DNA of 64,000 bases from Chara braunii (GCA_003427395.1 BFEA01000015.1:3421808-3485807); one strand, 5' to 3'. Positions 1,136 through 60,410 are shown, counted from the stretch's first letter. The notes: a model not told the origin generated them from the letters alone. Translations and numbers: made by a program.

Positions 1136-1208
1136 TGCTCTTTCTCTAAGGGATGGGTGACCGACATTGGGCTGCTATCACGGGGTGATGACTTGATTAG
1201 GACTAGAA

Positions 1209-3544: not shown

Positions 3545-4780
3545 CGCGATGGAGGAGAGGGTAGAGACGAAGGTGGAGAGGAGGGAGAATCAGAGTAATC
3601 GAATTCGAGATCGTCGCCTTCCTCTTGAGAATAGAGGGACGATGTGGACGAGGGGAGAGAAGGAGAAGGAGGCAAGGGACGAAGGTAGGACACGGGTCGA
3701 ATGATTGGCCAAGCCGATCGACTTTCTGAGACCTCCTGCGCAAGTCGGACCGTGTTCACTTTGCTTGGACCGAGCTCGACTCTGTGAAATCGCCCGAAGA
3801 ATTGTGGCGCTAACTTGCCCTGGCGAGCATATTTCCTCACCTGCACTACGTCCCCTAATTTATACTTGGGCCGAGGCCCAGCATTCCCATTTCGGGCCTC
3901 GTAGCTCCGGACCTGTCGTCCGTGGACCATGTCGGTCATCCGCTGTCTTTTTCGGGCTAACCGGGGGAGGGTTTTTTCTATCAATTCTAAGTGGCGTTGG
4001 ACCTTGTCTTTGACCGTTGCTCTCGTGGCTCGTCGTTCAAGGGTCGTCTCGTGGTTTAGGCTCGACAGAGCTACACAAGCTAGACTATTGGTCCGTAACT
4101 GAAAAGGGGTCAGGCCAGTGGACTCATGAGGGGTCCCCCAGTGGATAGCTAGGATATGGTCCACGATATCGGGCCAAGGCCTCGTGTCCCGTGCTGCGAT
4201 ATTTCGCCGTAGAGCTGTCTTAATCACTCGGTTTGCATTTTCTACTAGTCTGTCGATTGCGACGTATAGGGAGTCGTATTACGAATAGAGACACCATGTA
4301 CGACTAGGCTCCGTAAAACTTATCCTCGGAATTCTGCCCTATTATCCATTAGGATTTCCTCGTTGTCCTAATGCATTCCGAGGAAACGGTTGACATACCG
4401 CACAATTTTCGTCGCCTGTCGCGTTTTACAAGGGTAGGTTTCAATCCGTTTTGAAAAATGATCCACGAATACCAGAAGGACTGAATATTCGCAGCTATTC
4501 GGTCCAGGGGGTATGACAATATCCGTTGTATCCATGCTAACCCTTTGGAATAATCGTTCGACTACGGTAGGTATTATCCATCTAGGCGGTTGAATCAGCG
4601 CCTTGTCTCGCAGACCGGGTAATTGTTAACGATGAATTTAACATCGTCATGGATATTGGACCAATACCATTCGTTTTTATCAATCGCTGCCTTTGTGATC
4701 CTGACAGCAAAGTGAGCGGCGGTTTCTTCGTGGCAGTCGTACCTCATGAACAGATGACGACATCCAAATCCCACTACCAT
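3541..4780 (-). pseudogene. Integrase (HHCC zinc finger, rve core and C-terminus), disrupted
   Basis: CHEETAAHFAVRIT...WYWSNIHDDVKFIVNNYPVC; IKTALRR...WPDIVDHILAIHWGTPHESTGLTPFQL; GKLAPQFFGRF (GPY/F-like). Confidence 0.88.
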
Positions 4781-5419
4781 CTGTCTTTCGTTTTAACTGT
4801 TCGTCATTCCTTCGGTAATCCCGTGCCCTCTCGTTAGCTCACCTCCGATCTTCATTGGTGAATTCTCGGAGGGAGTTCCTAACCACCGTAGCTATCAAAA
4901 CGACATCTCTCCATACTTCCACGCGTTGAAATCTGCATATCCTTTTCAGCACTTCGGACGTGGCCTCAAGGAATCGGGCCTCCGTCGGGATTTTATTGGT
5001 TTGACACAAAGGACATAACCAGGCTTTATCTCCGTTTCTGTATTGGATAGAGAAGTCCTGGGCCCGGGAGACACACTGTTGACAATCTACCCATTCGACA
5101 TACCCTTCCCCACTATGACGCATCGAAACCGAATAGACTCGCGATATTGCTTCGCAAAAATAACCAAATTTGTCGGGCAGGGAGAGAAGAGAAGAAGTCG
5201 ATGGGGGAGAAAGGGGGCCTCTAGAGTTACCTCTTCCACCCATCGCCATCGTGTCCACGTGTCACTTCCTCGAGGACCGGGGGAGAATGACCACTTCTCC
5301 ACACGGGGATCTCTTGACTGACTCCGGCTCCTTCCACAGAGTGATCTCTTCACCCTTGGTCACCTTGCATTGCCAGTGTAGTCGTGTCCACCCATCCACG
5401 TTCCCATGCTTTTTTGTCT

Positions 5420-7039
5420 TCTGATGAATGATGTTGAAGTCGTACTCTCATTGCCCAATCATGCCCGTATAGTTAGTGAGTCTCTTGAGGGCCAGTAGGG
5501 GCTCGTGATCCGTGATAAGGAGGAACTTATGTCCGTATAGATACGGATGGAAGTGTTGAATTCCCCAAACAACCAAGTAGCACTCGTCTTGAGGGGCCGA
5601 ATCGTTCCTTCTTTCGTCAAGTACAGTTCGTGAAGCGTATTCGATGATGTGCTCGCGACCGTCCTTCCCCTTCTGGGCCAAAATAGCGGAGATCGCCTAA
5701 GGCTGCCAGTTTGTGATGGGGATGAACTGTTTCTCAGGATCGGGCCGAATCAACATAGGCGCCGAGGCCAGGGCCTCCTTCAGAGTAACAAAGACATGTT
5801 CACACTCCGCGTCCCACTTCAGCGGCTGGTCCTTTCGTAAAAGATCTGTCAGGGGCTGGGTGATTGTCACAAACCCTTTGATAAATCGTCGATAATACGA
5901 GGCCAGCCCCAGGAAGGCTCGAACTTGCGTCAGTAACATGGGCATAGGGGCTTCTCGAACCGCCTCGACTTTTCTCGAATCCGACCTCAAACCTCCTCGT
6001 GTCACCACATACCCCAGGAACAAGATTTCCGAAAGGAAGAACTCACTTTTCTCCAGCGCAATCTTGAACCCAACATCCCACAATGCCCGAGCGCCCATTC
6101 CATGTGCCGAGCATGTTCGTGAAACGATTCAGAATACACCAAGAGATCGTCCATGTACACAATGACGCAAAAATTGATCATTCCTTGGGTCATTCGGGTC
6201 TTGTTGACGAAGTTCTGAAAGGTGATGTTCATCGTTCTCTGAAAGGTAGCCGGTGCGTTGCATATTCTCATACGACAACGAACCCACTGCCACATGCCCT
6301 CGAACAATACGAACGCTGTTTTCAACCGATCCTCCTATTTAACCAGGATATGATGGAACCCATGGCGGATATCAAACTTACTAAAATATCTAGCACACCC
6401 AATCGCATCCAACAGATCATCAATCCTGGGGAGGGGGTACACATCCTTGATTGTGATGTCATTCAACTTCCTATAATCGATCCATATGTGAATCGACCCG
6501 TTCTTCTTTGGAACTAGGACTACGAAAAATGACCATGGTCCGGTAGCTGGTTCAATCCAACCGTTAGCTTCGAATTCCCAAATTCGTTCTAGCGACGTCT
6601 TTCGTTTGGCGAGGGAATATCGGTATGACTTGCTGAGGATCAGTTGGTGCATTCTGGTCTGGATTTCATGCTGAATAACTAACGATAGTCCGATGTCTGT
6701 GCCCTTGACGCTAATCACTTCTGATTTTCGGTTAGGCGCGATTAGTCGATGAGTTTCATCGGACACATACTGGGGCACATGTAGCTCATAAAGTTGTTCA
6801 TGTATACTAACTATCACTTGTTTCGTGCCTACTTTACTATCGTTCTCTGACGGAGGAGCAAAAACAAATGAATTGTCTGATCGCAAAGAGAACACCGTGG
6901 CGACCATCTGGGCGTCTTCTTCCTTGATTGCCACGTGTTCTTCTGGTGTTACACTGTCATCGATGTCCTGCAAGTTTATGGGTTTCTTGGCAATCTTGAT
7001 CCCGAGTTCGTAAGGGTTGCCGCGCCCATGGGGTTCCAA
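5420..7039 (-). pseudogene. Reverse transcriptase and RNase H, frameshifted
   Basis: VVLVPKKNGS..IDYRKLN..YPLPRIDDLL; KTAF; NAPATFQR; YMDDLL; VRAFLGLASYYRRFIKGF; IEYASR; FLLITDHEPL. Confidence 0.96.
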
Positions 7040-7336
7040 AGCTCCGTCTTCGGCGCCCTGTCTCAGCAGTCAAACCTCTTTCCCTCTAGAAAGCAGGGAA
7101 CAAGGTAATTTTGTAATGTCGCAGAATGCTTTCTTGTCATTATACCTTAAGAGATGTGGGGTGGTGGCTTCGTATAGGGTCTGAGGGGGTTCCAAAGAAT
7201 CAACCATTCGGGATACTTGCACGAGTGGTTCCCCTAAGATTAGAGTCTGTGATCGTTGGATGTTTCTTTCCGTAAGGACAAAGGTTTTCGTCGTTTTCTG
7301 TCGAACCAGGTAGCGAATTAGTTGATGCGCCAGGTT

Positions 7337-8113
7337 TCAGATCTTTGGGTCCGCTTCGTCCTCGCTGTTGGAAGAACTTTCTGATAACTTTGGTTCCTCT
7401 CCCCTTTGGTCCGTTTCTTTGAGGGGTCCCCTCCAAGTGATCACATGGAGTGGTTCTCCATTCCTGGGGAGAGCTTTCCGAGTCGTAGGGAGCGTAGTTC
7501 GAAGAGTTAGACGCATCGGGATGACGTACGGCTTCCCACCTGTATTCCGGAGGATGATGGACCATCTCTTGAAATCGAGGTTGGCTCTCAGTGCAGTAAG
7601 GGCCAGTAATCCCAAAAGAACATCGTACGTATTCACATCTAATATCACGACATCTCCCAATGCGTGAACTTTTCCTAATTGAAACGCAACGTTCGTCATC
7701 CTTCCTACCACCTTGAGCTTTTCCTCGTCGGCAGAGACAAGGTGATCTCCTTCCGATAACGGGATCAGGTCCTTTCTTCTGCCTGCTCGTTCTACAACCC
7801 TTAAGGAAATGGCCAGGACCTCGGCCCCTGAGTCGATGATAGCATTGTACGGGTTTCCCCAAACTTCTATGTCGCATTTTGCAGACTTCCATGGAATGGC
7901 CTTTATGCGCAAGAAGTGATCATATTTTTGGATGAGTCCTAATCGTATCAGGTCCGAGGTATTGAGGACATCTTGTTTGTCCTCGCAGGCGGGGGGTTTT
8001 CCTTTCATGGTTGCCTGCTTCATGAGGGTAAACCGTTTCCGATTTGCCTTGCAATGCTGCAACATTCGTCCATTCGCCTGTTCTGATATGGACAGCAGGT
8101 GTCCGATTGGCAA
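7337..8113 (-). pseudogene. Retropepsin aspartic protease region of polyprotein
   Basis: AIIDSGA catalytic motif; YDVLLGL. Confidence 0.92.
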
Positions 8114-8119
8114 AGGGAT

Positions 8120-9409
8120 TCAATGATCCAGGGCTCGGATAATATTCAGGAAATCAATTTCTCCCGTAACGAAGGCAGGGCCGCCCGATTCCATTTCTCC
8201 GGGGGACGGTCTCCATTCCGCTATTTCTCGTTGCTCGTTTACTGGGCAGATGGTCCCGATCATTCCCAAACCTGGGTAACCCAGCGAGATGTATTGGTCG
8301 AGCGGGATAAGTTCCGCAACCTCCTCAGTGGTAATCATTGCACTTCCTCTTCCTTTTGTCTCCTCAATCATCATGCCCACCCGTCCGGGTCCGTTGGCCA
8401 CTGGCACTACTGCCACAAGGGCGGCTCCCACCCGGACTTGTGTCGGTCGGTTGGGGCAATCCCGGGCTAGGTGGCCGGGCTGGTGACACGTGTAACAAAC
8501 GCCTAGATTAGCCACCGCACCACCCACAGCCTGAGCGGGGGCTGCTGCCTGTGTTAGAGGTGCAGCTCGGACAACAATAGGGCGCATCGATCTCATCATA
8601 AATTTTATCCGGGCATTGTACTCACGCTGTTCTTTCTTACTTTCTTGCATCAAGCTAACTAGCGTTCGAGTTAGTTCCAGTATGGCATTTGAGTCACTTG
8701 GTTTTGCGAGGGGGTCTAGAGGAGGCGCAAGTGGGGAAGGCGTAGGTGCGACCATCACCAACAGTCCTGTGGTAGTATCTGGTATCGTTCTTAGCTAAGT
8801 AACGAGGCCAGAGACGAAAGCCATATTTTCGAACTTGTTTTGGAGCTCAGCTAGTTCGGCCTTTGCCCTGGCCAATTCTGAAGAGTCCCCTTCCTTAGCG
8901 TGGTCTTCCCCTTCTAAAAGGCTCGCGACAAACTTTTTCTCCATTTCTTCCGAAGCGTCCATGATCTGTTGCATGGTGTGGTTGATTGGAGAGAACTGCT
9001 TTCGCAGCTTCGCCCTCATCGTTCAACTCCGAAGCACATCGATAAACAGGTCCCTCTCGACATTTTTGCCCCGTTCTGAGTTAACAAACAACCTATAGAA
9101 CCTACTGCGGTATTCAGCGACGGATTCGAGGGGCTTCTGGACTCGATCCTTAATCATGAACAAGGCCTGCTCAGGGTGGATGTAGTGAAGGTCGGGAGAT
9201 GTAAACCAATGGTGCGCATCCCCTCCCAATTTGGCGGGGATGTTGATCCTGGCCTCATCATCGTCGTATTGTTGTGCACGCAGTGTGGCTAGCCATGCTC
9301 CGGCCAGATGATGCGTAGGGTCGAAGAGGTATAGATCAGGCGGGGTTGTTGGTGCACGTGCTCGAGGGGCCGGGGCCCCACCAGCATTTAGTGTCGGATG
9401 GGCATTCAT
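8120..9409 (-). pseudogene. gag with CCHC zinc knuckle, in-frame stops
   Basis: LGGDAHHWF, QKPLESVAEYRSRF (retrotrans_gag-like); CYTCHQPGHLARDC. Confidence 0.92.
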
Positions 9410-9566: not shown

Positions 9567-9779
9567 ACCTCACGCCCGACACAACTTCCTGATCGGAGTG
9601 TGAGTGGGTCTGGAAGTGTGAAAAGGGGGTGTGACAAGGATTTTAGAAAAGTGGGGTTGGAGTCCCAGATCGAAATTGAGATCTCTTGTGGCAAGCTCTG
9701 GGATACAAATGCAGGAGGAGTTTTGTTTTGCTTAAGGGAGCGGAGTTACCGCCTCCGTTGGTTTCGTTGTCTGGGTTCA

Positions 9780-10320
9780 ATCTGGTGTACTGTCGGGACG
9801 CTATGGCTATCCCGCTGGTTCATCACCTACCGACGTCGAACGTCGCAAGTCTCCGAGTCCGACGCGGCTGGCCTTAAGCATAGGTTGTGCGCGCGTCGTT
9901 CTTCCTCCGAGCGAGTTTGCCAGATGAAGCCAGAGGCTCGGTACTCGTGGTTCCGGAGACACTCTGAGCATGGGGGTTGGGGCCACTGAGGAGCAATTGC
10001 GAGTCAGGGGATGATGGTAAGGGAGTGATTGGATAGGATGCGGTGATAGGGAGGGAACTCGGTCCCTATAAAATAATGATTCCAGGTTCCGTGAGGACGT
10101 GACACGTGTATGGACTAGAGTAGCTGGGGAGATGGGGGTTACGTCCCAAGGCCTGGTCGAGATCCCACTCACAAATGTGTTCGTTCCCCGTTAAGTAGGG
10201 AAATTCCAGAGGTTCCGCCCAGGACCTTGCAGACAAACAAGAGTGTTCCCAATATTCTCGGAATTCTTGATCCCTCAAGCACTCGTGGTCAGTGACACGA
10301 AAGGGAATGTTGAAATTCAT
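9780..10320 (-). pseudogene. Diverged, disrupted copy of the leader-encoded unknown protein
   Basis: Manual translation ICEWDL...APQWPQPPCSECLRNHEYRASGFIWQTRSEEE...LRPAASDSETCDVRRR aligns with ORF 16133-15609. Confidence 0.8.
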
Positions 10321-10870
10321 GTTGCAAGCCGGGGTGGAAAATCAGCCATTCAGGAAATTGGTCGAGTTCACTATTCAGGTTTCGTAGACGCGCGTGTAGA
10401 CAGCGATCGTCCTTGGTCGGGCCTACACGTGCGTGCGCGGGACCTATCCTCGATCAGATGGGTGAAAGTCAGCGGGTCACAAGGAGGTTCATCTATAGTG
10501 AGACAGTTATCTAATAGTCTAGCATGCCTATCCGATTCATACACAAACAGAATCGCGCCTATCATCCATGCATCTAGCTCACATACAAGCAGAAGGAATC
10601 GAGGATCATGCAATAATTCTTACAACAATTCTTCGGCCAATCAGCCCCGAGATCACACAAGGTTCGATCATCGATAACCACTCTATCAGATTAGCCGATT
10701 CCAAAAGGGAAGGGGAGTGGGAGAAAACATTCCACACATCGTTCTTCGAGGAGAGAAAACAAGAAAGGAAAAAAAAACTCGAGATTCCGATCCAAAAAGG
10801 ACAAGGGCTACCGAAGCCGATACCAAAATTACTTAGAAGAATAGAAGAAGAAGCTCATCACACACCTTCC

Positions 10871-10872
<2 letters not shown>

Positions 10873-10953
<81 letters not shown>
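10873..10953. repeat. (CT)n microsatellite
   Basis: Direct inspection. Confidence 0.97.
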
Positions 10954-10955
<2 letters not shown>

Positions 10956-11788
10956 CCATCTCGATGCGGGCAGTCCGTCGCCTCGCACCCACATAGAGTT
11001 GTCACCCGACTCACCCCGCTTGATCCGAGCATGCAAGCCAGGTTCGTCTGTGCGCCACAGTCCGTCGCGGCCCCACGTTAACCTCGCATGCCTAGCATCA
11101 GCTTGTCAGATCGCCCAACTCTCTACTCACCTTCCAAATCTTGCTCGTTAACCAATCCTCTCGACCTCGCTAACTTCCAAAATTCTTAGAGAGTAAGTTA
11201 ATCGCGCTTGCAAAATTTATAGCATGCATGCATGCATGATACTCGGGATTATGTCCGAGTAGGAGGGAGAAGAAGGAAGGAAGTGTGCCTACGACTGCAT
11301 GGTCAGGCCATAACGTGTGGGACGTAGCCTCACTCCACACATCGATCTCGTCATGCAAGCGTTCAGGCCAACAAGACAGAGGAAGGAGAATGCGTGCACG
11401 AGGGTGCTACAAAAGATATCAAGAGGGAGAGGATTACAGTTGCAACTATGCCCTCCAAAACAAGAATTACAGTTACACGAAAGGATTAAGGCACAGAAAA
11501 ATCAGAGCGCGGATCCTGACGCGGCAAGGCGTGCGCAAGCAAGAAGCGTCGTGCGGCAGAAATTGAGGTGCGCCCAAATTCCTAATCTGAATCCTAAATC
11601 AAAAAGAAATTCCGAACGAAGCAATTTCGATAGCCCGCGAGGGTTTGTCATCAGTTGAAAGTTCAAAAACGATTTTCCCGCGTGACGATCGCACCTAAAT
11701 TATCATTTCCCACAGCAGAACAAGAAAGAAGCTATGTCAACACTTATCTTTCGCGCTCGCTAAGGCGCGATCAGCTACAACCGTCACA

Positions 11789-14700
11789 AGATTACCCTGG
11801 TCTGAAAGAGAAGAACACGGAAAGCAAGGGCACCCATGCAATTCACCAGGCCATCCCGATTCAACTCGTTTCGACCCCCGAAGTATTTTGCCGCAAAAAG
11901 TTGCGCGGCTGCAGAAAACAGTTCATCACAGGGTGGCCATCTGGCCCCCCCCACAGTCAAGGTTGCAGATGGTGCACTGAGCGCTAAACAAGCAGGAGTG
12001 GCGATGGGTGTCAATGTTAGGAATGTTGGAGCTAGAACTGATAGTATTTTATGCATCTATGCCCCAAACTCTGTTAGGGAGCGGAGGACCTTTCTCGGGA
12101 TCCTGGAGGCAAGAATCCTCGACGGGATTCCGTTGGTGATAGTAGGGGATTTCAACGCAGTCCCAGATAGGTGGACAGGCCGTTGGAGCCTGCTATCTTC
12201 CCCATCCCATGTAGCCGAGGAGGACGAGCAAATGATGGAAGACCTATGTAGCTCATTGTCAATTTGCCACTCTTCGACACCTTCCGCCGCGTTCATCTCA
12301 ATAATTGTACCTTTACATGCACTATGCGGCAAGGTAATCAAAATCACTCTTGTATCACCTATGTATGATACGTGATAACGACCCCGCAAGGCAATCAAAA
12401 TCACGCATTCATCTCATTCTCTCATCTAATGATATGGAAAGACCTCTTCGAACGGCAATCATCCTACCACTTCGTCCCCACCCTGGGCTTGATCACAAGA
12501 CATGCGGGGTGACCCTTATGATGCGAAAGCGGCCCGATTGAGGGTCAGGTTTCCACAAGCTGGACACATCCCTACTCCTTGATGTACGGCTATAGTCCCT
12601 GATCAAGGCAGAGTGGTCCTTCTGGCAGCGACAAAAGCCCAGTTTCGACTCCTTAGTGACATGATGGTTCAATAATGGTCTTTTCTACCTTGCAAAGAAG
12701 TGCAAGGAGTTCTCCAAGGAACATGCGCCCCAAAGAAACTACCATGAGAAAGAACTTCACAGTGAATTCCACAACCGGGAACAACAGGTAGAACTGCAGG
12801 TCAATCCACAAAATCGAGGGCAAACTAACTAAGTTTAAAAACAAAGCTTCTATAGACACTCGTTTTTTCAGCTTGGCTACAACAAAGATTGGGCGTACAG
12901 TGATCGTGGCCCTTTTTCACTTGGAGGAGGGAAGGGATAGCTTAGCCATCTCAACAACCCACTGTACATGAGTCACTATAACCTTTTTAAAAAACCTCTA
13001 GACATCTCAGATTGCGGATCCATAGGATAAGGCTAGGATGAGAGACCTGCATGATTTTCTTAGGCCAATGACGACAGCCCTGTCGAGGCAACAAAAAGAA
13101 AGTTTGGACACCCCACTTACCAAGGGTGAAATATGGATGGCGCTGCTCCAGATGGAGAAAAGAAAGACCCTCGGGATTGAGGGCTTCCAAAAGGAATTTT
13201 GGGAAACCTTGTGGCCCACCCTGAGCGTGGACTTGTGGAGCTACTATCAAAAGGTATGGGAGGAAGGGGACATGGGGGGGNACCGGGCTTGTATCCAGCG
13301 GCCTAGCTCAGTTAGTAAGGCACGCAAGTGGCATTCAGGAGGCCTTGGGTTCAATCCCCATTGGCCTCATGTACCTCTGTCTCTTATACACATCTAGATG
13401 TGTATAAGAGACAGCTATAGGCCCATCACCCTTTTGACGGTAGTCTACAAGATGCTTACCAAAGACTTGGCAAACCGAATGACCAAGGTTTTAAAGGGCG
13501 TTATACACCCGGCTCGGACTGGTTTTTTGCATAATAGAAGAAAAACATTCTGATGGTAAATGAAATGGTCAGCCTGGGTAGGTGACAAAAGAGGAATGTA
13601 GGTATCATCTTTAACGATTTCGGAAAAATCTATGACCATGTTGACTGACAGTTCCTATACAGGGGTACAAAAAAAATGAATTTTGGCCTTGTCTTTTGCA
13701 GATGGATAAGCATCTTGCACAAAAATGTCAACACTTGCATCTAGGTCAACGACATGATGCCCCCCCCCCGTTCCCGCTGCAGCGGTCGCGACGTCATGCA
13801 AGTGGCCCCGATCGCCCCTTACCTCTTCCTTATTATAATAGAGGCCTTATCGGCCAACCTGCGAAGCAACAAAGATATAAAACACGTTGAGGTGGACGGT
13901 ATCCCAGAGGAGGCGGTCCCAGTCTGCTCCCTATTCACGGACGGCCTAACAATCTTGGTGGAAGCAAGCACACAAAACCTAGAGAAGATTCATACCTTGA
14001 TGGATAGGTTTTGCCGTTTATCAGATATGACGGTGAATTGAGGCAAAATAACGGTGGGATGGCGGTTTCATCATCAGGGTGGCAGATCGCCCGAAAGACC
14101 ACAGATTACATGGCTACCTCTCGAGGCCCCGCTGCGGGTTGTGCGTGCATCCCTATCAACAAAATGTAAGACCGGGTCCAATGATGAATGAATAACTAGC
14201 GCAGCGAGGTCCAAATTACTCAACTGGAATGGGAACCACACTTCAATTTTTGGACGGAAAATCCCCAGGCTATATAAGGATGGTGGAGTCGAAGAGGAAT
14301 TGTGAGTGTGCCTACTTAACACATGGAGGAAACTGCCAATCCCAGACATGCCACCCCTTGATCAGTGGAAGGAGATCTCTAGGCAGCCGCTGTTCGGGAA
14401 TAGATGGATCACAGACATCCACGGCCAGGTCAGGCGCAACTCAACCTTCCCATGGAAAGGGTGGGTCAAGCATGGGGCACTCCGAGTGGGGGACCTGTGG
14501 GACATAGAGGCTGGGGAATGGGAGAGTGCAGATAGGATGAAACAATGGTTGAGGTATTGTCATCGCATAGAAGAAGTTATAGGGACATTGATTGAGAGCA
14601 TCTCTTTGGCATGGTACATCATTTTAAAAAGGGGCTTGGTACTGAAGGAAGGAGACTGGGTGGGGCTCCCTGGGGACCCGGGTTCAGTTGGAATGGTGCA

Positions 14701-15320
14701 TATGGTGGGTGGCAACGAGGTGCTGGTCGAGAGATATATGTTGTGAGAGAGGATGTCCTAATAGGGAGTAGGCAACCATTTTTCTGGGTCCACAAAGTGG
14801 AGGTTTTTCTTATCAGGGTCATGCATATCGTGGGGAAACAAAGGGTCTTTTGGTCATTGACACCAATAGCAGACCTGACCATCGACCCTAGGGAATGGTA
14901 GTGGAACCTGGGGGGGGTAAGGGGAAGGAGAGCAAGGACTGCACAACGACCCATGAGCTATACGGAGACTCAAAAGAGAATTGCGGAACACAATCTGCGA
15001 CAGATGGCAGCGTCACCTCAATGTGGATCGAACCACCATGCATCTCATTCAGTGGTTTCACGAATCTAAACTACGGTCAGCCAAGATCTCATCACTACAG
15101 TGGCAAGTGGCCCACGGATGCCTCCCAACAAATGATTGGTTGATCGATCACACGAGGTTAGAGCAAGAGGGACGAGCACTTCTCTGGTGCGTAAAATGTT
15201 TGCGGAGCTATAATTCGCGAAAGAGGATCGAAACCATAGAGTACCTCTTCCTGCAGTGCCCTTCGTCGGTATTATTGTGGCGATGGTGGGACAGGATATG
15301 GCGGCAGATGGTCCCCTGCA
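11789..15320 (+). mobile_element. Decayed L1/Tx1-type LINE ORF2 (APE-RT-zinc finger), truncated at both ends
   Basis: APE: GVA, IYAPN, IVGDFNA, LDH; RT: GIEGFQKEFW, IAPYLFLIIIEAL, LFTDG; C-terminal WCVKC...ETIEYLFLQC. Confidence 0.92.
13377..13414. other. Nextera mate-pair junction adapter (assembly artefact)
   Basis: Exact CTGTCTCTTATACACATCT+AGATGTGTATAAGAGACAG. Confidence 0.99.
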
Positions 15321-17619
15321 TGTGACGCTCAAAACCTCACGCCCTGCGCTGCTTCCCGGTCGGGGTGTTTTGGCTTGCGGAAGGGGTGCCCAGGGAAAGG
15401 CAGCAAAGATGGGGTGTGACAAGGATTTTTGGAAAGATGAGTGCGGGGACACAGACAAAACTGAATCCCCCGCGTTGATCCGACGGTAGTAAGAAGAAGT
15501 TTCATCACCTCGTGGGTTTTAAGGGAGAAAAAGGCGCGCGAGAGACTTGTAGCTATGGGAAATTCAATCTAAAAAGTATCACTGGACTTCCCAGCGAACC
15601 GTCGCTCTTCATTTCGCGTGAAAGGGGGCGGGCACACACGTGGTATCCCATTTTCGGATGAGGTCTTGTCGGCGCTTGTTACACAACTTCGAGTCCGACG
15701 TGGAGGGCCTCAACCGAGTAGCCTTTTCTTTGTGCTCGTCCTCGCCACGTGTACGATAGTGGAACCCCTTGGCCTGATAATGCTCGAAGCGACGACAATC
15801 GCTGCACTCAGTGTTAGGCCAATGAGGCTCCACTGTCGTCCACCGGTCGGTGATCAATTCGTTAAATGGCAATAACAACGAATATGGCAGAAAGTTTGTA
15901 TCAATGATAATAAAGCCCGCACCCATGAATCCATAACACCGAGTTTCGGGAGGAAAGTAATATCGCCCTCCGATCTTGGCGACGGCTTCTCGTACGTCCC
16001 ACTCACATACACGTATCCTTTTCTCGTTGTACGGGAAGGGGCGTGGCGGGGGCACGGAAAGTTGGCGCCCGGTCGGATTGGGGCCGTCAGTCCACACGGC
16101 ATCAAAGGTAAGCTTAAAACAGATCTTAATCATACATCATTCGGCTGACACTCCAGGCAACCCGATCATTCAGTCGATCAACCAATTGTCCTTACAATCA
16201 TGCCATAACAAACGACTCACCGCATGTACATGCCGAAGTGAGAGAAGCAAGGTTACCATAATTCATCCATTACGATATAACGGGACCGGAGGAGAGAAAG
16301 AGAGAGAATACGGACGCAGACCAAGAGGGAAGAACGAGTAGAAAGCAATCACAGAATGTCAGGCAATCTTTCCCAGGGGAGTTCTGGCTTAAAAGCCGAT
16401 CGGTCGAAATTTACACTCGAAGATACAAATTTTGGGACAAAGAAAGAGGGAAACACTTCTGCCATAAAATTCCACCATAGCCCCAGGCCATACACTCACT
16501 CACTTCCAACTCGAACGTCTCACTTGCACTGACGATTCCGACCGTCACGTGCCAACCCACCATCGTGATCATCAACCTGCCGACTTAGTCAATGCACGGC
16601 CCTGCTCGGATCCTACAGTCTGTCGGGCGATCCAGCATGCCGAGTGCTAGAACTACAACCAGCTCGTCGGGAGTTTTCGACTCGCACCTTCCTTCATACC
16701 ACCCAGCCATAGCTTCTCAGAAGTGGGTTGATGAGTGGAGAGAGAGATTTTCGGGAGCGCTTGCGGAATTTATAGCTGCAGAAAGGAAGATAGATGCTAG
16801 GAAGGGTTACGACTGAGACAGGGAGGAGTAGGGAAAGGTTGAGGGATTGCCCGACGAAAGCCATGTCGATCATTTGGATCCCAGCTACAGCCAATAAGAA
16901 TCATCATGTGTCAGGAATTTCCTCCTTACACGGCACGTCTCCTTGGCTAGGGGAAGTGAAAGAGGGTCGACAGGGTATTTCGACACGGGGATCAGAGCGG
17001 GAAGAAAAAGAGAGCGGAGAATAGCATGAAACTAAACCAAGATTCAGACGATCAAGAAGGAGAGAAAAGGCGCGCAAGGTCGAAGGAGAGATGAAAAACA
17101 GTTACGGAGAGAGAAGAAGGGTGAGCGCAGAGAAGAGAGTGTCGAAGGCAGCGTGGGAAGCGGGGAGGGGAGGCTTGCATGCATGACGCCGACGCGGAGG
17201 CAAAAAGGGCTCCAAAACAGTTACAACTAATTTAAATTAAAAAGTGTCATATCTGCGCGGTAGAGCAAGCGCAGAAGAAAATCCTATACCTATTCAGGTT
17301 CCTACGAAAATTCCTAGAGCTTTCCGAGACGAAGTTGAGAACATTCAAGCGCAAGAAACGACACGTCAGATTCCTCTCATTCCGGAATTCCTAACCGTCG
17401 ACCCAAATTCCTAGCACGCTCGCTAAGGCGCGTGTAATTCCCATGTAATTCCCAAATTTGCAAAAGATAAATTTTTGAAAGTGATTCGACGGTCCCGCAT
17501 ATTACATTCATGAACATACAAAAAGAAGCCTCATCGGGCTGTCACCCAAAATTCGAGAAAGAGGAGGGGGGGGGGGGGCCGACAGAAGGTGGTGCACGAA
17601 CGAAAGATAGCGCATCACA
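15321..17619 (-). mobile_element. LTR-like unit B (solo leader or 3' LTR-like copy)
   Basis: Termini TGTGACGC...GCATCACA; collinear with 20242-23020. Confidence 0.88.
15609..16133 (-). CDS. Conserved unknown Cys/Trp-rich protein (174 aa) encoded inside the LTR-like unit
   Basis: Uninterrupted ORF; homologues at ~20510-21010 and ~9780-10320, with many synonymous differences from the 20.5-kb copy. Confidence 0.75.
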   Translation of the reverse strand: MIKICFKLTFDAVWTDGPNPTGRQLSVPPPRPFPYNEKRIRVCEWDVREAVAKIGGRYYFPPETRCYGFMGAGFIIIDTNFLPYSLLLPFNELITDRWTTVEPHWPNTECSDCRRFEHYQAKGFHYRTRGEDEHKEKATRLRPSTSDSKLCNKRRQDLIRKWDTTCVPAPFHAK

Positions 17620-17699
17620 TATGTGACGCTCAGAGGGTTCCAAAACTATGCGATCTCCTGATTGCATGGAGGAGAGTTATGGCGAAGGAGATCGAAGAT

Positions 17700-20150
17700 A
17701 GTTAGGAGATGAATGAGGAACCCAGCGTATCAGGATGGTGTACAAGCGTCCTAGTCGACCGACGTTGACTCACGTTTGGGACCTCAGCCCCCCAGTGTGT
17801 CGATTCGCGTGCGGGTTCGATTTTTGGGCATTCGACCGCACGTACCCCCTATGCTACAACGAACGAGAAATGCCCTCGGCTGGGCCACCTTTGCAATTGC
17901 ATACGAAAAACCTTCGCATGTGGTTCAGTAGCTCGACGGGGATACGTCCACCCAAGGGATGGTGACAGCTCCCGCAGGTGGAGGTAAGCGGTGCCTCGCG
18001 TGACCCTGTCCTGTCGTAGGGGCTTGCGAGAGGTATGGCTGGCGCACTCGGTCGAAGCGGCAAACGCTCTCCGTGACAAGTCCTGCAAAATCCTGCGTGA
18101 CGCGGTTGGGAGGGTCTCCGTGCGAGACCGATGCGCTCGACACTAGGATGTTTCTTCGGCGATCGAGTAGGGACTCGTAGAGGGAGTGTTTGAGGTTTCC
18201 CTCCCGTATGGGTGAGAACGAGTTGTTTAGAATCGAAATGGATCCGTGCGCCGACCACCATCGCCCAGGGCAGTCCTAATAGTATCAAATATAAATGTAC
18301 GTCGATATTTTATGTGTTAACCAGCATATGTACCCGACCCACCTTGATCGCAACGTTCTCAATGATCCCTACGATATTCATGGCCTCTTCATCGGCCGAG
18401 ACATAATTGTCCTTCCCTGGTAGAGGAAGGATAGAGTTCAATCGTCCAGTCTTCCTGACTGTGTTCAGGGAGATAGCTACGGCTGATGATCCAGTGTCAA
18501 TAAGCGCATCGAACGGTTTACCCCAGACTTCGCAATCACATTCCGCACTTTTCCATAGGACCGATCGGACAGGTACAAAATGATCTTTCTCGGCGTAAGA
18601 AATAGCGGCGATTCTCACCATTTCAGGTGCGCTAGACTCGATCGCAGGGGGAGGACTTGTCTTGCTCTCATCTTTTTTTTTTTTTTTCAGCATACGCTGA
18701 ACGCGCTGGTAGGTAAAGCGCTTTTGATTCTTCTGGCATTGCTGCAGGAGTTTGTCATTTGCAACTTCGGATATGGTCAGCAAGTGTCCTACGGGGACCG
18801 ACTTTCGGATGTCCAATTGTTTGAGTGTATGTAGGACATCGATCTCTCCTGTTTGAAACTGTAGTCCTGGTTCCGATGTGCATTTGACCCAATCGAGTTC
18901 GTCTTTGGCAGCTCGGATCGCTCAGATCAGTCCGGCCAATTGAAGGTATTCGGTTGGACCAACGATATCTGCGGCCCCGGAAGAGGATCTCGATGTAGAT
19001 GCGTCCTGATCGGTTGAGGGTGGTTGATCGGCGACGGAGGGTGAAACTTCCCTTGCGTGTTCTAATACTGCGGCCACCCGACCTTGATTCAAGGCCACGG
19101 GCGCGGCCGCAGGGGGTGGCTGATTACGTTTCAGTTGAGGGCATTCTCGCGCAAAGTGTCATGGTTGTTTACAGTTGTAGCATTCAATCCTCCCTGCTGG
19201 TCACGGTTAGCCATATGAAGAGGAGCGGCAGGAGGGGCTGGTCCCCCTGCGGGAGGGGCAGTAAGCAACGGGTACTGAGTGGGGATGGGGCGGGGAGGGC
19301 TGGAATTAGCCTTTACTAGTTTCGTCATAATCTGTTCCAGTCGATCCATCTAAGAAGCCTGCATCTGGAGCAGGTTATTCATCCACTCGGACTGTTCAGT
19401 CGTAGCGGTATGGATCACCTGGGCCAGATGCAAGTTGGTAATGGGTACTGATGCGGCATCTTGGGCCATGACCGTGCTTACAGGCGCCACTTTGGGAGGA
19501 AGAGGAGGTTTCGCTAGAGGCAGGGAGTGATACGGGGAGGAATCCGGGGCGGGGCCATCCTGGTAGTCATGATCGGGACGAGGGTAGAATCGTCCCACCG
19601 CTCTGAGCCATGACCGTTTCTTGGTCGCCACGTCCTGGATCGTGTCCGAAATGTCTTCTTCTCCCTGACTAATATACTTACTCGTGTCCAGCAGATCTAG
19701 CTCAAGGGCTTTAGCTATGATGCCGGACAATTGGTTTGTCTTGGGAGGGGCTTTTTTCTGCAACTTCGCCTTCAACACGGGATTGCGGAGACGATCGATG
19801 AACAGATCTCGGGCAGCATTTTCTTCCCGTCCCAATTTATCCAGGGCGGTCTGAAAACGATCTACAAAGTCAGGTAGCAATTCCCCTGGTTCTTGCGGAC
19901 GGGTTTTCAGTACGAACCATGCAGCATCTTCGCTGACCACGTCAAATCGCGCTAGGAACGCTCTCTTAAAAGTATCCCAATCTACCCATCGGTGCCTTCT
20001 GAATCAATTATGCGCGGTGTTTCGGAGTAACAGGGTGATGGTGCGGGGAAGATCCTCGACGCCATAACCCTGTGCTTGCACGGCTTCAAGCCATGCCTCT
20101 GGATGAGTGTAGTTAGGATAGAAGGGAAAGGTAGCGGGGATGCTTACCAT
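17700..20150 (-). pseudogene. gag-protease polyprotein with Cys-rich C-terminus
   Basis: QEPGELLPDFVDRF (gag); VPVGHLLTISE and WKSAECDCEVWGKPFDALIDTGS (protease, homologous to 7337-8113); ILLGLPW; then CRTC/CGSC/CNC. Confidence 0.85.
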
Positions 20151-20225
20151 CACACAGAGGCGATTAGATTGTTTAGCTGATCTTCCTCTCGCCAGCTCGT
20201 CTCACTAACGTCAGAACCAACACGT

Positions 20226-20241
20226 GTCGGCTCCGATACCA
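20226..20241 (-). promoter_or_regulatory. Primer-binding site for initiator tRNA-Met
   Basis: Minus strand TGGTATCGGAGCCGAC, identical to 9551-9566. Confidence 0.9.
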
Positions 20242-20509
20242 ACCTCACGCCCTGCGCTGTCTTTGGTTTGGAGTGTTAAAGGTGCGGAAAGAAGGCCCCG
20301 AAAAACAGCAAGATGGCGTGTGCCAAGGATTTTTGGGAAATTGAGTGTGGGGACACAGACAAAACTGGAATCCCCCGTGTTGGTCTGATGAAGTGAGAGA
20401 ACTGGTCGGTTGCAACACGGGTTTCGAAGAAGCACGCACGCGAGATTTGTGACGCGGGGAACTTTGAATTAAATCTAGAAAATACCGTCGGACCCCACCG
20501 AGCCACGGC

Positions 20510-21010
20510 TCTTCGTTTAGGGTGAAAGGGAGCGGGCACGTGCTTAGTATCCCACTTTCGGACTAGCTCCCGACGCCGCACGCTGCACAATTTCGAATAT
20601 GACGTGGACGGCCTTAATCGCGTGGCCCTTTCCTTGTGCTCATCCTCATCTCGTGCTCGGTAATGGAATCCCTTTGATTGGTAGTGATCAAAGCATTGGT
20701 AATCACTACACAGAGTGTTAGGCCAATGGGGCGCCAGTGCCGACCACAGGATGACGATCAACTCGTTGAATGGTAATAGTAACGAGTACGGCGGAAAATG
20801 CGTATCGATAATGACAAACCCGACGCCGACAAACCCAGAACACCGATTTTCAGGAGGGGAGTAATATCACCCACCGATCTTTGCGACGGCTTCTCGTACG
20901 TCCCACTCACACACACGCGTCCTTTCCTCATTATACGGGAAGGGGCGAGGTGGGGATACGGGAGACCGGCGCCTAGTCGGGTTGAGCCCGTCAGTCCACA
21001 TGGCAATCAA
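20510..21010 (-). pseudogene. Second copy of the leader-encoded protein (one CGA>TGA stop)
   Basis: WTDGLNPT..PPRPFPYNEERTRVCEWDVREAVAKIGG*YY...PHWPNTLCSD...KGFHYR..LRPSTS..KWDTKHVPAPFH. Confidence 0.85.
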
Positions 21011-23832
21011 TCAGGCGCCCAAAATATCCTCAATCATTCATCGTAAATCCAGAGTCGAGAAATGTATAACTTATCGATCAACCAGAAAGACAGCGTCAAA
21101 ATTCCAAAAGAAAACGAAGAAGGAAAGGAAATTTCAGAGAGAGGGAGAGACGAAGACTCGTGTATGGTGGGGTGCGGCCACTGTTACGTGTATCAGTTGC
21201 ACGTGGTTTTGAAATCCCTCATTATTTTACGAGGGTATGCTGCATATGCTGCGCTGTATAAGGCAGATGGCATGTGCATTGTGTCCTGAATCACAACATC
21301 AACGGATCCAAACACTCTTGCATCCTCGAACAGAATCCCAACAACATTGCCTCTGTCATCGATTCGTTGGATAGTGTCCTAATCAAAACGAGTTTCGTGT
21401 CCGTGTGCATACATTCACTGTGGAAGGTGCGAAAGGCGGTTGTCATGCAATGCTCCTGCCCTATTGTGCCAAAAGCGAGTAATCACAATCCATTTCGGTG
21501 GTTGTTACACGCGCATCCATCATTCACAAGACAAGGTGATCAAATCTCAGCAAGTCCGAGGATTACCCAGGAAACTAATGGAAGAGTTCCGGAAGAAGGT
21601 CTTCCGAGTATACATTCACAAGTGCTTATTCCATCACAAACCGAAGAGATCGACTCTCATACATGATTATTCACATCAGCGAGAGACGAGAAGGAGAGAG
21701 AAAGAGAGACATGCGAGAATATCACGCCAGGAGGGAGAGGTCACACTGAGATCTGGGAATGCAAGAGAAGGTTCGGCTTTACCGTTGTAAGCTCACACTA
21801 AAGAATGGATTCACAACAAGGGGGCGTACTCGCCGTCAAATTCCAACATGGTCCCGGGCCAATCATCCACTGAACTCGAATCACTCGTCTTCATTCGTGC
21901 ACCGACGATCCCGGCCGTCGCGTGTCACCATCCAATACTGCAATCGTCACCCCGCCACTCTAGCCTCGACGTGGCTTGCCCGGATCCCACAGTTCGTCGT
22001 GGCGATCTAACGCACAGCCAGCCAGTCTACAGTCGGCTCATCAGGACTGTTCTCTCGCCCTATACACACATCATCTAGCCACTGCTTCCCGAAAGTTGGC
22101 TGAGGAGTTGAGAGAGAGATTTGTTGGGGCGCCAACGGAATTTATAGTTGCGAGAAGGGAGAGAGACGAGAGGAAAGACAAAGAGTGAGGTAGAGGAGGG
22201 TAAAGGAGGGCTTGAGAGTAATCGCCCGTCGAAAGCCATGTTGATCCCCCTCAACTCGATCTCAGCCAATCTGAATCGTCGCGCAGTAAGAACTTACACA
22301 ACGCTTCTCCTTGGCTAGATGGGGAGAGAGGATCGACTGGGTTTTCGAGCGCGGATCTTAGAACGGGAAGAAGAGGAGTGTGAAGGATAGAGCGAAACGG
22401 GTCCAAGATTCAGATGATCAAGAAATAGAAAAAGGGCGCGCGCTGGGAAGGAGAGGGAAAAGCAGTTACAGGGGGAGGGAGCGAGAAAGCATGTGCGCGC
22501 GAAGGGAGGCGTTGAGAGGGGCGCAGGGAGGAAGGAGGAGGGAGCTTGCTTGCATGGCGCCAGTCGGCAAAAGGAGAATGGGCACCGAAACAGTTGCAGT
22601 TTTTCCTAATCCTATGCTAATTCAAAAATTGAAAGTACCAAATCCGCGCGCAAAGCAGGCGCGGGAAAGAAAGAAAGTCCTCCGTCCATCCATATTCCTA
22701 CAAGAATTCCACAGTTTTCCAGGTCGAGGCCGAGAACATTCGCGCGCGAAAGGTCGCGTGGTGTTCCGTTAATTCCGGAATTCCTAACTGTCGAGCCAAA
22801 TTCCGAGCGCGCTCGCTAAGGCGCGCGAAATTCCCATGCATTTTCAACAAAAAAAAAAGAATTGACAGATTTCAACGAGGTACCTTTAATCGAGCAAAAA
22901 CAGAGGGAGGGGGAGGGGGGGGTTCTCGGGGGTCGAACAAGACACATCTGGATGCAGAGAAATGACGGGGGAGAGAAGGGGTCCAAAAGTTGGCGCACGT
23001 CCGGAAGCTGGTTCGTCACAGACCACCCGGTGGTGGAGGAGGACGTTCGAAAAAGGTGACTTTCACGCCTCTCCGAGAATTCAAAGAAGGCATACATTCG
23101 TCTGACACTTCTGGTGCTTTGACGCTTGCGTGGCGATGGCCAAATGAACAAACAGTGGTGCCCTTTTCTTTGTCTTTTTCTGTGGTAAGGCCCTTGATCA
23201 GATGATTTGGAGGCCTCTGAAGAGCGGCCCTGCTGGCAGTAGTGGGGGGATTTGTTCGCAATGAACGAAAGAAAGGAAAGTATAGAGAAGGAAGACCGGG
23301 AAAAAGGAACAACCCTGAAAAGATCTTTGTGCATCATTCCGGTGTGTGCCGGCTTATGACTGGCCCAGACCAGTGGCGGTTGCACTTATGCAGATTCTTC
23401 CTCCCCTTTCCTTGCCGTAGATCTCTGCCTAATCTGCCATCAGATATGAAGAACCCTCCCTCCTTTTTTTTCCTTCTTTTTCTTTTTGAAGAGCCCTACC
23501 CCGTAGTGCCAGAACGGAAGGTGCATGCAACCCCCCCCCCCCCCCCCCCCCCCCCACCACCAAAAAAAAAAAAAAGGAAAGAACGGAAGGTGCAGAGAAG
23601 AGCAAAGGAACAAAAACAGAAACCAAAAGTACAGAGTGTTTTACCGAGCAGACTGTGGGGATCCCGGCCCCAAAATCTCGAATCCCATGTGTTTTTCTGT
23701 TTAAAAAAAAAACAAAAAGCGTACAGAGTTCAAACAAACCATCACAGTCCAGGCTTCGGCTGGGACTTTGGAGGATGTACCTGAGCACAAATGATGGCCA
23801 GATGCGTCCCAAAAGGGGAAACTACGCGGGAG

Positions 23833-24423: not shown

Positions 24424-25000
24424 CTTCACCCGAATAGAACGCCCGGTCATTGCAGCTGTATTTCTCCCAGATTTCCGTCCAGATGCGGCGATAATGACCG
24501 GGCTTGTATCCAGCGGCCTAGCTCAGTTAGTAAGGCACGCAAGTGGCATTCAGGAGGCCTTGGGTTCAATCCCCATTGGCCTCATGTACCTTCCTGGGCA
24601 AGCTTGGCCCCCGCCACCTAGAGATATGCGGTTGGTCCCCCCAAGTGGCATTGAGCACAGACTGCTGATGTTCATAGAGGGAGGGGACCGGAGGGGAGGC
24701 ACAGTGACTGGCCCATCGGAGAAGCTCGGTCCTGATGCTACCGGCTGACCCCTGGCCGGTATCGCCCACCTGCTGTAGCAGGTATCGCACCTGCTGGCAG
24801 CTCCCACATGTTCCCTCGTTGGAGGCTTGAGCACGGATGTGGCTGCTACGGGGTTCCCCGTAATACTATAATGACAATAAAAATGGCCTGAAAGGCCGTC
24901 CTGTCCAGATTTGACAGGTAATTGATTTGGTTGGGCTTAAAGAATTTGCCTTTAAAAAAAAATAAAAAAAATAATGACCGGGCGTTCTATTGGGGTGAAG
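24424..25000. mobile_element. MITE b-related TIRs enclosing a SINE
   Basis: CTTCACCCGAATAGAACGCCCGGTCATT...AATGACCGGGCGTTCTATTGGGGTGAAG. Confidence 0.65.
24513..24880 (+). mobile_element. tRNA-derived SINE, copy 1
   Basis: A box TAGCTCAGTTAG, B box GGTTCAATCC; body shared with the 25088 and 25596 copies; tail GGCTGCTACGGGGTTCCCCGTAATACT. Confidence 0.85.
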
Positions 25001-25087
25001 AGGGTAGTGGGACCTCGCCCCTGTCGAATCTACCGGATGGCTCTGGGGACCCTTTTTTTTTTTTTTTTTCCCTTATATCATCATTTT

Positions 25088-25560
25088 CCGTAGCTCAATT
25101 GGTAAAGCACACAAGTGGCACCCGCGAGGTCATGCGTTCTACTCCCATCGCCCTCACCGACCTACCTGGGGGCAAGTCCCACTACCAGCGTTGAGCTACC
25201 TCAAAGCCTGAATCTGGATGCTTTTGCGGAGATGTGCAGGAATGGTGTTGAGTTTCCTGAACTGCACGTCTCCACAAACACGTCCAGATTCCCGCGTTGA
25301 GGTAGCTCAACGCTGCTAGTGGGACTTGGCCCCTGGGCATACTCGTTACCCACCATCTACGGTTGGGTAGCAGATACTGCTGATGCTTGTAGGGGGAGTG
25401 GACGGGAGTGGAGGTACAGTGACTGGCCCATTTGGTATGGTCCCTGACGCTACCTGGCCAGTATCACCCACCCGCAGAGTAGGTGTGGTCCCCGCATGTT
25501 CCCTCATTGGAGGCATGAAAATTGATGTGGCTGCTACGGGGTTCCCCGTAATACTGTAAG
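25088..25560 (+). mobile_element. tRNA-derived SINE, copy 2, carrying a 148-bp foldback insertion
   Basis: TAGCTCAATTGGTAAAGCACACAAGTGGCA head; same tail as copy 1. Confidence 0.8.
25177..25324. repeat. 148-bp foldback (hairpin) insertion
   Basis: 28-bp arms with 1 mismatch (TCCCACTACCAGCGTTGAGCTACCTCAA / TTGAGGTAGCTCAACGCTGCTAGTGGGA) plus inner complementary arms. Confidence 0.9.
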
Positions 25561-26888: not shown

Positions 26889-27825
26889 NNNNNNNNNNNN
26901 NNNNNNNNNAAACATTGAAGAAAACATACTCTTGATTAATGAAAAAAAAAGTCTTGCACACCAGTCTAAGAGTAATGTTGCCCTCATTTTTATTGACTTT
27001 GAAAAACCTATAACCATGTGGAGTGGTTTTTCTTAGACAGATGCCTGGATCGCCTGAATTTCGGGAGTAACTTCCGACGATGGGTGCGCATCTTGCACGA
27101 GAACGCCACCACGAGCATTCAGATCAACGGGGTGCTAGCTCCGGCAATAAGGCTACAACGTTCTGTTAGATAAGGGGATCTCACTGCCCCCTTCTTATTC
27201 ATTACCATTATGGAAGCGCTAACAGTCAACCTCCACCAAAGCAAAGACCTTAAAAAAATTCAGATCTTCAGCATCACAGAAAGAATGCATTGGTAATAGT
27301 ATCTTGTGGTTCAACAACGGCCTAGCATTCCTAGGACGTAAGTGCAATGAATACTCCAGAGCCTTGGCAAAATCAAGAAATCAAAAAGAGAGGGAAACCC
27401 TTCAAAGACTCCAAAAACTCCAAGAAAAGGAAGAAAAAACGGACGATCTAAATACAGAGCAAATGGCAATGGAAATCCAATCACTAGAAGATCAATTAAT
27501 GAAATACATGGAATACAGATGGCAAGGGTTCAGAATACAGGGGAAACCAAGGAAACATCAAATGGAAGGTGATATGGATGCTCGCTTCTTTGCTATGGCC
27601 AAAGTAAGGTCAGGTAAAACCACTATAGAAGCCTTAATGAACCCCTTCAATAGTGATGAACCCTTAGCCATTTCCACAGCAGCCAGCATGAAAATAGCTA
27701 GAGATTTCTATAAAGATCTATTCACATCCAAAAATTCAGCTATTCCCCCAGAGCAAAAGGAAAAGGAAATAGAAGATTTTCTTATTCCCCTCAACAAATA
27801 AATATCAGAAGAACAAAAAGAACAT

Positions 27826-28707
27826 TTGGAGAGGTCAATTTCAAAAGATGAAATTTGGAAGGCACTAATTGTAATGGAAGAAGAGAAGACATCCGGAATT
27901 GACGGTCTTCCCAAAAAATTTTGGGAAGCCATGTGGGGTCCTCTTGCACAACACTTAATGGACTATTACCAAGCAGTATGGGAAGCAAGGGACATGGGGG
28001 AGATAGTAAATCAAGGATTCCTCACGCTTTTGTATAAGAAAGGTAATAAACTCAACGTTCGTAATTACCGCTCCATCACTCTACTTACAGTGGTCTATAA
28101 ATTAATAGCAAAAGTACGAGCAGATAGAATGCTCCAAGTCATTGTCGATATTATTCATCCAGCCCAAACAGGATTTATAAAAGGTAGAAACATACAATAC
28201 AATATCCTCCTCATAAATAAACTTATAAAAGTAGCACGCCAATCTAGACATAATGCGGCATTTATCTTCATTGATTTCGAAAAAGCTTATGACCATGTAA
28301 ATTGGCTCTTCCTAGACAAATGCCTAGCTAAGATGAACTTTGGGATTAACTTTAGAAGATGGATCACAATCTTGCATCAAAAAGCAACCACAAGTGTGAT
28401 GGTTAATGGTAGCTTAGCGCCTCCTTTTGAATTGACAAGATCGGTGAGACAAGGCGACCCTTTAGCACCCTTTTTTTTTATTATTATAATGGAAGCATTT
28501 GCAGCTAACCTAAAGAAAAATAAGGATATTAGAAAAATACGAGTGACATCCATCCCAGAAGAGGCAATCTCTATGTGTTTACGTTTCGCTGATGATTTAT
28601 CCTTGATGATAGAGGCATCACAGGAAAACATGAAGGCAATCCAGGATTTAATGGATAAGTTTTGTAGACTAGCAGACATGAAGGTCAATTGGGGAGAAAT
28701 AAAATAG
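27826..28707 (+). CDS. Non-LTR reverse transcriptase core (open segment of disrupted ORF2)
   Basis: RT motifs DFEKAYD, RQGDPL, FADD. Confidence 0.9.
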   Translation: MERSISKDEIWKALIVMEEEKTSGIDGLPKKFWEAMWGPLAQHLMDYYQAVWEARDMGEIVNQGFLTLLYKKGNKLNVRNYRSITLLTVVYKLIAKVRADRMLQVIVDIIHPAQTGFIKGRNIQYNILLINKLIKVARQSRHNAAFIFIDFEKAYDHVNWLFLDKCLAKMNFGINFRRWITILHQKATTSVMVNGSLAPPFELTRSVRQGDPLAPFFFIIIMEAFAANLKKNKDIRKIRVTSIPEEAISMCLRFADDLSLMIEASQENMKAIQDLMDKFCRLADMKVNWGEIK

Positions 28708-60272: not shown

Positions 60273-60410
60273 GCACACACGCACGCACAAACACACAGAG
60301 TGGTTGGACGAGAATAATAACATCATACATCTCTGCTAGTAGACCGTCCACACGACTGCTTCACTACCAAGTTTGAACATGTTGGCTTTAAGAGAATAAT
60401 CACCTCGTCC
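59640..60410. repeat. Tandem duplication with (CA)n microsatellites and an N-gap
   Basis: CAGAGTGGTTGGA.GAGAATAATAACATCATACAT at ~59790 and ~60296; Ns at 60107-60221. Confidence 0.88.

Follow-up and report, generated by a model that had tools for sequence, protein, structure and literature searches.

The classical ORF carried within an LTR is sag of MMTV, which is located in U3 and encodes a membrane glycoprotein, the superantigen. Complex retroviruses encode small basic regulators (Tat, Rev, Rex and Tas) with arginine-rich segments that act in trans on their own RNA or LTR; their genes are located internally or in the 3′ region, and expression is from spliced RNAs. In plant LTR retrotransposons the additional ORFs (aORFs) that have been described are in the internal region, either upstream or downstream of gag-pol (PMC7264820), which agrees with the position given for known extra ORFs in an earlier note on the DNA described here. 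A literature search for ORFs inside retrotransposon LTRs returned nothing relevant.

We have analyzed a 64,000 nt stretch of the Chara braunii genome (GCA_003427395.1, BFEA01000015.1:3421808–3485807), referred to throughout as the window, which contains an ORF within an LTR. The ORF is similar to plant aORFs such as Ogre ORF1, which lies upstream of gag (PMC7264820), in being an extra gene that is conserved within its family, accompanies gag-pol in Ty3/gypsy elements of the green lineage, and is in sense orientation and 5′ of gag. It departs from them in being inside the LTR and upstream of the PBS, and hence at both ends of the element, whereas the aORFs are internal, and in sequence it resembles no described family. 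With MMTV sag it shares the property of being a protein-coding ORF within the LTR of a reverse-transcribing element, although the Chara TATA box is upstream of the ORF, suggesting a position in R/U5 and not in U3 as for sag, and the Chara product, a small hydrophilic protein with a tail that is basic, has no Pfam match to the sag family. The parallel that we propose with Tat, Rev, Rex and Tas is a possible functional analogy, drawn from composition and not from relatedness in sequence or structure. Accessory genes of LTR retrotransposons are known as such; what is new here is one in an undescribed position and belonging to an undescribed family.

Organization of the window

The window contains one intact copy of the ORF (ORF B) and the following features of the elements that carry it and its relatives, all on the minus strand.

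15609–16133 (−): ORF B, the LTR-borne accessory ORF, 174 aa, intact
15333–17619 (−): LTR B, a 3′ LTR, which holds ORF B; TGTGATG at 17619, GAGGTT end at 15333
16767–16775 (−): TATA box CTATAAATT of LTR B, 678 nt upstream of the conserved start
15321–15332 (−): terminal segment X′ (TTGA plus GCGTCACA) after LTR B; the 3′ terminus of the element, abutting a truncated LINE
17611–17631 (−): junction of X (GAGCGTCACA), TA and the start of LTR B (TGTGATGCG), a near-perfect palindrome
17622–20222 (−): composite internal region, with gag at 19940–19350, protease at 18816 to about 18200 and tail at 18142–17622
20223–20241 (−): PBS-like TGGTATCGGAGCCGACACG directly after LTR A; together with 11 upstream bases, 30/30 identical to that of element C
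20241–23020 (−): LTR A, a 5′ LTR; TGTGACG at 23020, TATA box at 22147–22139, GAGGTT end at 20241
20516–21037 (−): ORF copy A, with stops at codons 9 and 57; conserved ATG at 21001
9567–11788 (−): probable 5′ LTR of element C; TGTGACG at 11788, TATA box at 11222–11214, GAGGTT end at 9567
9566–9548 (−): PBS of element C, directly after the LTR
9794–10320 (−): ORF copy C, decayed, of a distant lineage, with stops and one frameshift
3544–9409 (−): coding remnants of element C, including gag, CCHC knuckle, protease, RT, RNase H and DDE integrase

ORF B has 174 codons and an intact reading frame (16133–15609), as the earlier note had reported, and a tblastn search of the window with its product identifies exactly two more copies, A and C. 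Copy A (21037–20516) matches with 70% amino acid identity over 174 aa. It had been described as a one-stop copy; both of its stops are in frame, and only that at codon 57 falls after the conserved start Met. The distant copy that had been placed at ~10320–9780 is recovered as copy C, which is 37% identical over 92 aa at 10069–9794, has a second match in another frame (27% over 48 aa at 10212–10069), and is broken by stops and a frameshift. The motifs quoted in the note (CEWD, P.WP...CS, GF...R.E.E, LRP..S.S..C..RR and D...VP) are all present, as is the change of the second Cys of CS.C to Tyr in copy A. The start that is conserved in the family (MWTD) is a GTG at 16097 in ORF B, and the ATG of ORF B is 12 codons upstream of it.

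The host element has the gene order gag – protease – RT – RNase H – DDE integrase, with Pfam matches to Retrotrans_gag (weak), zf-CCHC, aspartic protease, RVT_1 and RT_RNaseH; the integrase H2C2 and DDE motifs can be read in the translation of 4792–3544. Judged by the coding remnants of element C, from gag to the DDE integrase, the host is classed as a Ty3/gypsy LTR retrotransposon. The integrated termini are TGTGACG...GCGTCACA, i.e. TG...CA. A polypurine tract is absent directly 5′ of the 3′ LTR, and instead there is a pyrimidine-rich stretch ending in GCGTCACA-TA.

LTR A and LTR B are 68–73% identical and there is no target-site duplication. That the two are the LTR pair of a single insertion is ruled out by the 73% identity, a dN/dS of 0.12 and the lack of a target-site duplication. 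The interval 23020–15321 is probably a composite in which two family members are joined within their internal regions, and its internal region is without about 5.2 kb (RT, RNase H and IN) relative to L003, a related C. braunii locus described below.

Between the start of element C and the end of LTR B there is a 3.5 kb LINE fragment (11789–15320, plus strand) with endonuclease, RT and zf-RVT domains. It is cut at both ends, one of which abuts the start of the element C LTR and the other the end of LTR B, and the last codons and stop of the LINE run by chance into the LTR terminus. Related LINE copies are at about 27800–31500 and 31800–33900, and a continuation beyond A of the LINE that adjoins B was not found.

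Several other repeats are present. A tail segment of ~400 nt between the integrase and the 3′ LTR (17811–18204) has a DNA word depth of about 170,000, the highest in the window, as compared to about 10 for single-copy pieces, and in L003 it is also found apart from the rest of the element (29264–29656, 55378–55767 and 60399–60606). A MITE-like element of 528 nt (29386–29913) matches its own reverse complement and is 90% identical to L001 1978–2505, an insertion in an LTR copy on BFBZ01005442. A tRNA-like sequence of 95 nt is present with 100% identity at 13282–13376 and 24497–24591 (and also at 25069–25163); the first of these is inside the LINE and directly follows an N at 13281. ARAGORN calls no tRNA, and the repeat may be a SINE head or an assembly patch. 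At the left end of the window (1–1186), beyond the decayed 3′ part of element C, is a satellite of about 12 units of 91 nt with 84–93% identity.

Location of the ORF within the LTR

Further copies were obtained from C. braunii reference loci that were fetched via the pol genes of the family. In three of these loci in the reference assembly (L007, L008 and L013) the ORF is present in both LTRs, the pairs are 94–97% identical, and the pol genes lie between the two copies of the repeat that bears the ORF. Target-site duplications of 4 bp are present in L007 (TACT) and in L008/L015 (TGCT). The ORF belongs to the LTR and, because it lies within it, is copied with the LTR by reverse transcription at every insertion; the earlier placement of the ORF inside an LTR-like repeat is thus borne out by both LTRs of complete elements. 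A reading of the ORF region as a leader present only at the 5′ end, for which L003 with no second copy within 42 kb downstream was the example, is overturned by the LTR pairs of L007, L008 and L013.

The LTR starts with TGTGAYG (at 23020 in A, 17619 in B and about 45278 in L003) and ends with GGCGTGAGGTT, and the distance from the ORF start to the LTR end is a constant 760–764 nt. In A, C, L003, L006, L007, L008 and L013 a tRNA-iMet-like PBS comes immediately after the LTR end, with gag next, and in 5′ LTRs the ORF is about 240 nt upstream of the PBS. The junction of the LTR end and PBS is identical at all 30 of the bases compared in A and C, despite proteins that are only 30–46% identical. 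The PBS-like sequence itself (TGGTATCGGAGC) is identical in elements A and C and differs by one base from the classical tRNA-iMet PBS TGGTATCAGAGC, the form with which it was compared. No tRNA gene matching the PBS was found in the window or the fetched loci. The position of the ORF upstream of the PBS-like TGGTATCGGAGCC, as the earlier note had it, holds for copies A and C and fails for B, which is in a 3′ LTR with no PBS after it.

A, B, C, L003, L006 and L008 have a conserved TATA box (CTATAAATT), with the ORF 650–1300 nt downstream of it. It is the only conserved core-promoter motif, and a pyrimidine-rich patch comes after it. The architecture of LTR B recurs in L007, L008 and L014. There is no conserved promoter or splice acceptor just 5′ of the ORF, where conservation is limited to 12–20 nt around the ATG, and the segment from the ORF stop to the LTR end contains no TATA-like motif common to the A/B and C lineages.

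Coding potential and selection

About sixteen copies of the ORF were examined, from a family that DNA word depth suggests has probably thousands. L008 and L015 were treated as one locus assembled twice and were counted once; they have the element and its 3′ flank in common, with the 3′ LTR region of L015 partly inverted, and their likeness reflects either segmental duplication or assembly redundancy or error. The ORF is intact in seven of the ~16 copies (B, L001a, L002, L003, L004, L005 and the 3′ copy of L008), at protein identities to ORF B of 23–67%, and two further copies have a single stop past the conserved start.

The differences between B and A are distributed 24/23/70 over the three codon positions (p about 1e-8), with a dN/dS of 0.12, whereas in the two other frames the same alignment gives control values of 1.8 and 1.6. 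Between lineages the dN/dS is 0.08–0.20 (Nei-Gojobori) and not near 1, the third-position excess has p values of 1e-4 to 1e-9, and pN/pS is 0.3–0.7 where synonymous sites are saturated; the third-position excess from which the earlier note had read purifying selection is therefore confirmed. The ORF is conserved in at least four sublineages under purifying selection, and between A and C it has diverged about as much as gag and protease (37% identity versus 32% and 43–46%, respectively).

A different pattern is seen between the two LTRs of single insertions. In L008 the ORF differences are 14/11/10 by codon position with a dN/dS of 0.88, and in L013 they are 3/3/3 with zero codons that differ only synonymously. 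The within-insertion value of 0.88, as compared to the low values between lineages, shows that the protein is selected in propagating lineages and that inserted copies decay neutrally. This is the usual signature of a transposon gene, with selection while the lineage transposes and neutrality once it has inserted. What these data show is a genuine protein-coding gene, accessory to a clade of Ty3/gypsy LTR retrotransposons that has so far been seen in C. braunii.

Features of the protein and its relatives

Alignment of eight sequences reveals a conserved core at about residues 30–115, rich in aromatic and aliphatic residues, in which the invariant positions include R41, C43, F69, F74, F81, P83, L88, L93, W98, W105, P106 and C113 (ORF B numbering). 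The C-terminal tail is basic and hydrophilic, rich in Arg, Lys and Ser, with a pI of 9.8–10.6 and a GRAVY of about −1.5. C43 and C113 are the only invariant cysteines in the eight sequences; C110 is a Tyr in one of them, and in the distant group H104 is a Tyr and C66 is absent. Four invariant Cys/His ligands in a recognizable spacing, as for a zinc-binding domain, were not found in these sequences. Metal binding, which the earlier note had considered possible, is weakly supported with just two cysteines invariant, and may nonetheless apply to the main lineage.

The protein has no recognized family, as had been noted. Pfam searches with single proteins give zero families at E values up to 0.1, and those with eight aligned members give nothing consistent at E values up to 10, the sag family included. 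A profile search of PDB sequences has zero matches at E values up to 10, and an ESM Atlas feature search gave no usable match. AlphaFold2 models are of low confidence, with a pLDDT of 32 from three sequences and 41 from eight.

Relatives are restricted to C. braunii records and one ENA contig in a profile search of 1.84 billion representative proteins, two word-based searches and a metagenome scan, and the profile search of the 1.84 billion representatives contains no homolog that is free of the element. Two of the homologs (P0001 and P0004) are on small contigs filed under a Chara braunii project, and another (P0002) is on an ENA metagenome contig. A fourth, P0003, is a 1077 aa C. braunii gene model with the ORF domain at residues 423–578. 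This model spans 78 kb (L003 10001–88218, BFEA01000018.1) and strings together a Myb/SANT-like exon, the ORF of the L003 5′ LTR as the domain exon, and a DCP1 decapping gene; the chimera has the appearance of an annotation artefact. Public annotation of C. braunii includes the ORF solely as this one exon, and in this sense the description of it as unannotated was correct.

Termini of the elements

Each of the full copies has the order LTR – PBS – internal region – X – TA – LTR – X. The segment X has a length of about 11 nt, with GCGTCACA at its end, and a palindrome is formed by X-TA-TGTGACGC. The X-TA-LTR junctions are at 17631–17611 in the window, about 17231 in L007, 17858 in L008 and 17996 in L014, and the second X sites are at 15321–15332 in the window, 20042–20062 in L007, 20855–20875 in L008 and 21628 in L014. 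The 5′ LTR abuts the PBS and is never associated with X, and the 3′ LTR has X on both sides. This is the pattern that would be expected if plus-strand synthesis began immediately ahead of X and the ends of the cDNA were joined, with the palindrome at the resulting junction being cut afterwards. Integrase cleavage of palindromic LTR-LTR junctions has been described for foamy virus and HIV-1 (PMC1180852, PMC1905944).

Transcription

RNA-seq data from three oligo-dT runs give a depth of 2–3x, with reads that are mostly 90–95% alike and come mainly from paralogs. DNA reads of the organism have matches to the window of 99% or more. With these few reads, RNA depth tracks DNA copy number, and the ratio of RNA to DNA depth is roughly flat across the unit. 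The tail segment has more RNA reads than any other part of the window. There are no spliced joints among the few, mostly paralogous reads. Between the TATA box and the ORF there are 20–30 upstream ATGs, and simple cap-dependent scanning to the ORF is therefore improbable. Its translation would have to rely on shunting, reinitiation, an internal start site or splicing.

Discussion

The reading of these observations that we consider likely is that the ORF is a selected accessory gene borne by the LTR, with the TATA box upstream of it, a location in an R/U5 leader, and a product that acts in trans. Transcription would start about 30 nt past the TATA box, and a start at this position would place the ORF in R/U5 of the genomic RNA, as the first long ORF and ahead of gag; the term leader assumes that transcription is from the conserved TATA box. 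An alternative route of expression is a short transcript that both starts and ends within one LTR, which would apply if there is a poly(A) site between the ORF stop and the LTR end. The product of ~170 aa, in which an N-terminal core of about 100 residues is predicted to be folded, may act in trans for its own element, which we suggest with low certainty. From its composition, the basic tail may bind nucleic acid, and the likeliest roles would then be in handling the genomic RNA, through its export, translation or packaging, or in regulation at the LTR. This predicted trans-acting, nucleic acid-binding role is the weakest step of the proposal.

A different placement of the same gene is that it is real and LTR-borne but located in U3, with the genomic RNA starting downstream of it and the ORF expressed, like MMTV sag, either at the 3′ end of transcripts of the element or by a promoter of its own further upstream. 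A start downstream of the ORF would leave a typical R-U5 of about 200 nt, and gag would not have to follow a leader of over 2 kb containing dozens of upstream ATGs. The sparse, mostly paralogous RNA-seq reads do not locate the start site. However, conserved core-promoter motifs are limited to the upstream TATA box, with its pyrimidine-rich patch, and no TATA-like motif common to the A/B and C lineages lies between the ORF stop and the LTR end. We regard a U3 location as possible although rather unlikely.

Two other explanations concern the nature of the ORF and not its place in the transcript. That it is a piece of a host gene picked up by one element, or a gene that the host has domesticated, is suggested by the annotated P0003, in which the domain is beside Myb/SANT-like and DCP1 domains, but the domain exon of that 78 kb model is simply the ORF of the L003 5′ LTR. 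All of the copies examined are in LTRs, there is no element-free homolog among the 1.84 billion representatives, the ORF is shared by lineages with no more than 30–46% identity in gag and PR, and inserted copies decay neutrally; we consider either possibility very improbable. Alternatively, the open frame could be incidental and the conservation due to a constraint on the sequence as non-coding DNA or RNA, e.g. for RNA structure, for packaging or as a cis element of U5, since leaders of retroelements carry conserved cis elements and the neighbouring non-coding blocks here are conserved too (e.g. AAAATCCTTG and the LTR end). This is contradicted by the frame-specific pattern of substitution, as the substitutions have a three-base periodicity, the dN/dS of 0.08–0.20 is obtained in one frame only, and frames are intact at 23–67% protein identity to ORF B, and we consider it extremely improbable.

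Returning to the LTR-borne accessory gene in an R/U5 leader, a selected gene within the LTR makes the LTR a coding unit that is copied to both ends of the element, beyond its part as promoter and terminator. For annotation, the consequence is that the reference genome either misses the ORF or fuses it into a chimeric host gene model (P0003). The finding raises the questions of how translation of the ORF, and after it gag, is achieved on a leader that contains dozens of upstream AUGs, whether the protein is expressed by 3′ and solo LTRs, and what role a lineage-restricted protein has in a family that fills a large part of a 2 Gb algal genome. A more extended proposal, which we think doubtful, is that each LTR might be a self-contained gene, complete with promoter, ORF and terminator, that supplies a trans-factor, and that integration might proceed via a circle-type LTR-LTR junction, which the integrase would cut in place of the linear cDNA ends. 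If this is true, every LTR, including 3′ and solo LTRs, could supply a trans-acting factor needed by the clade.
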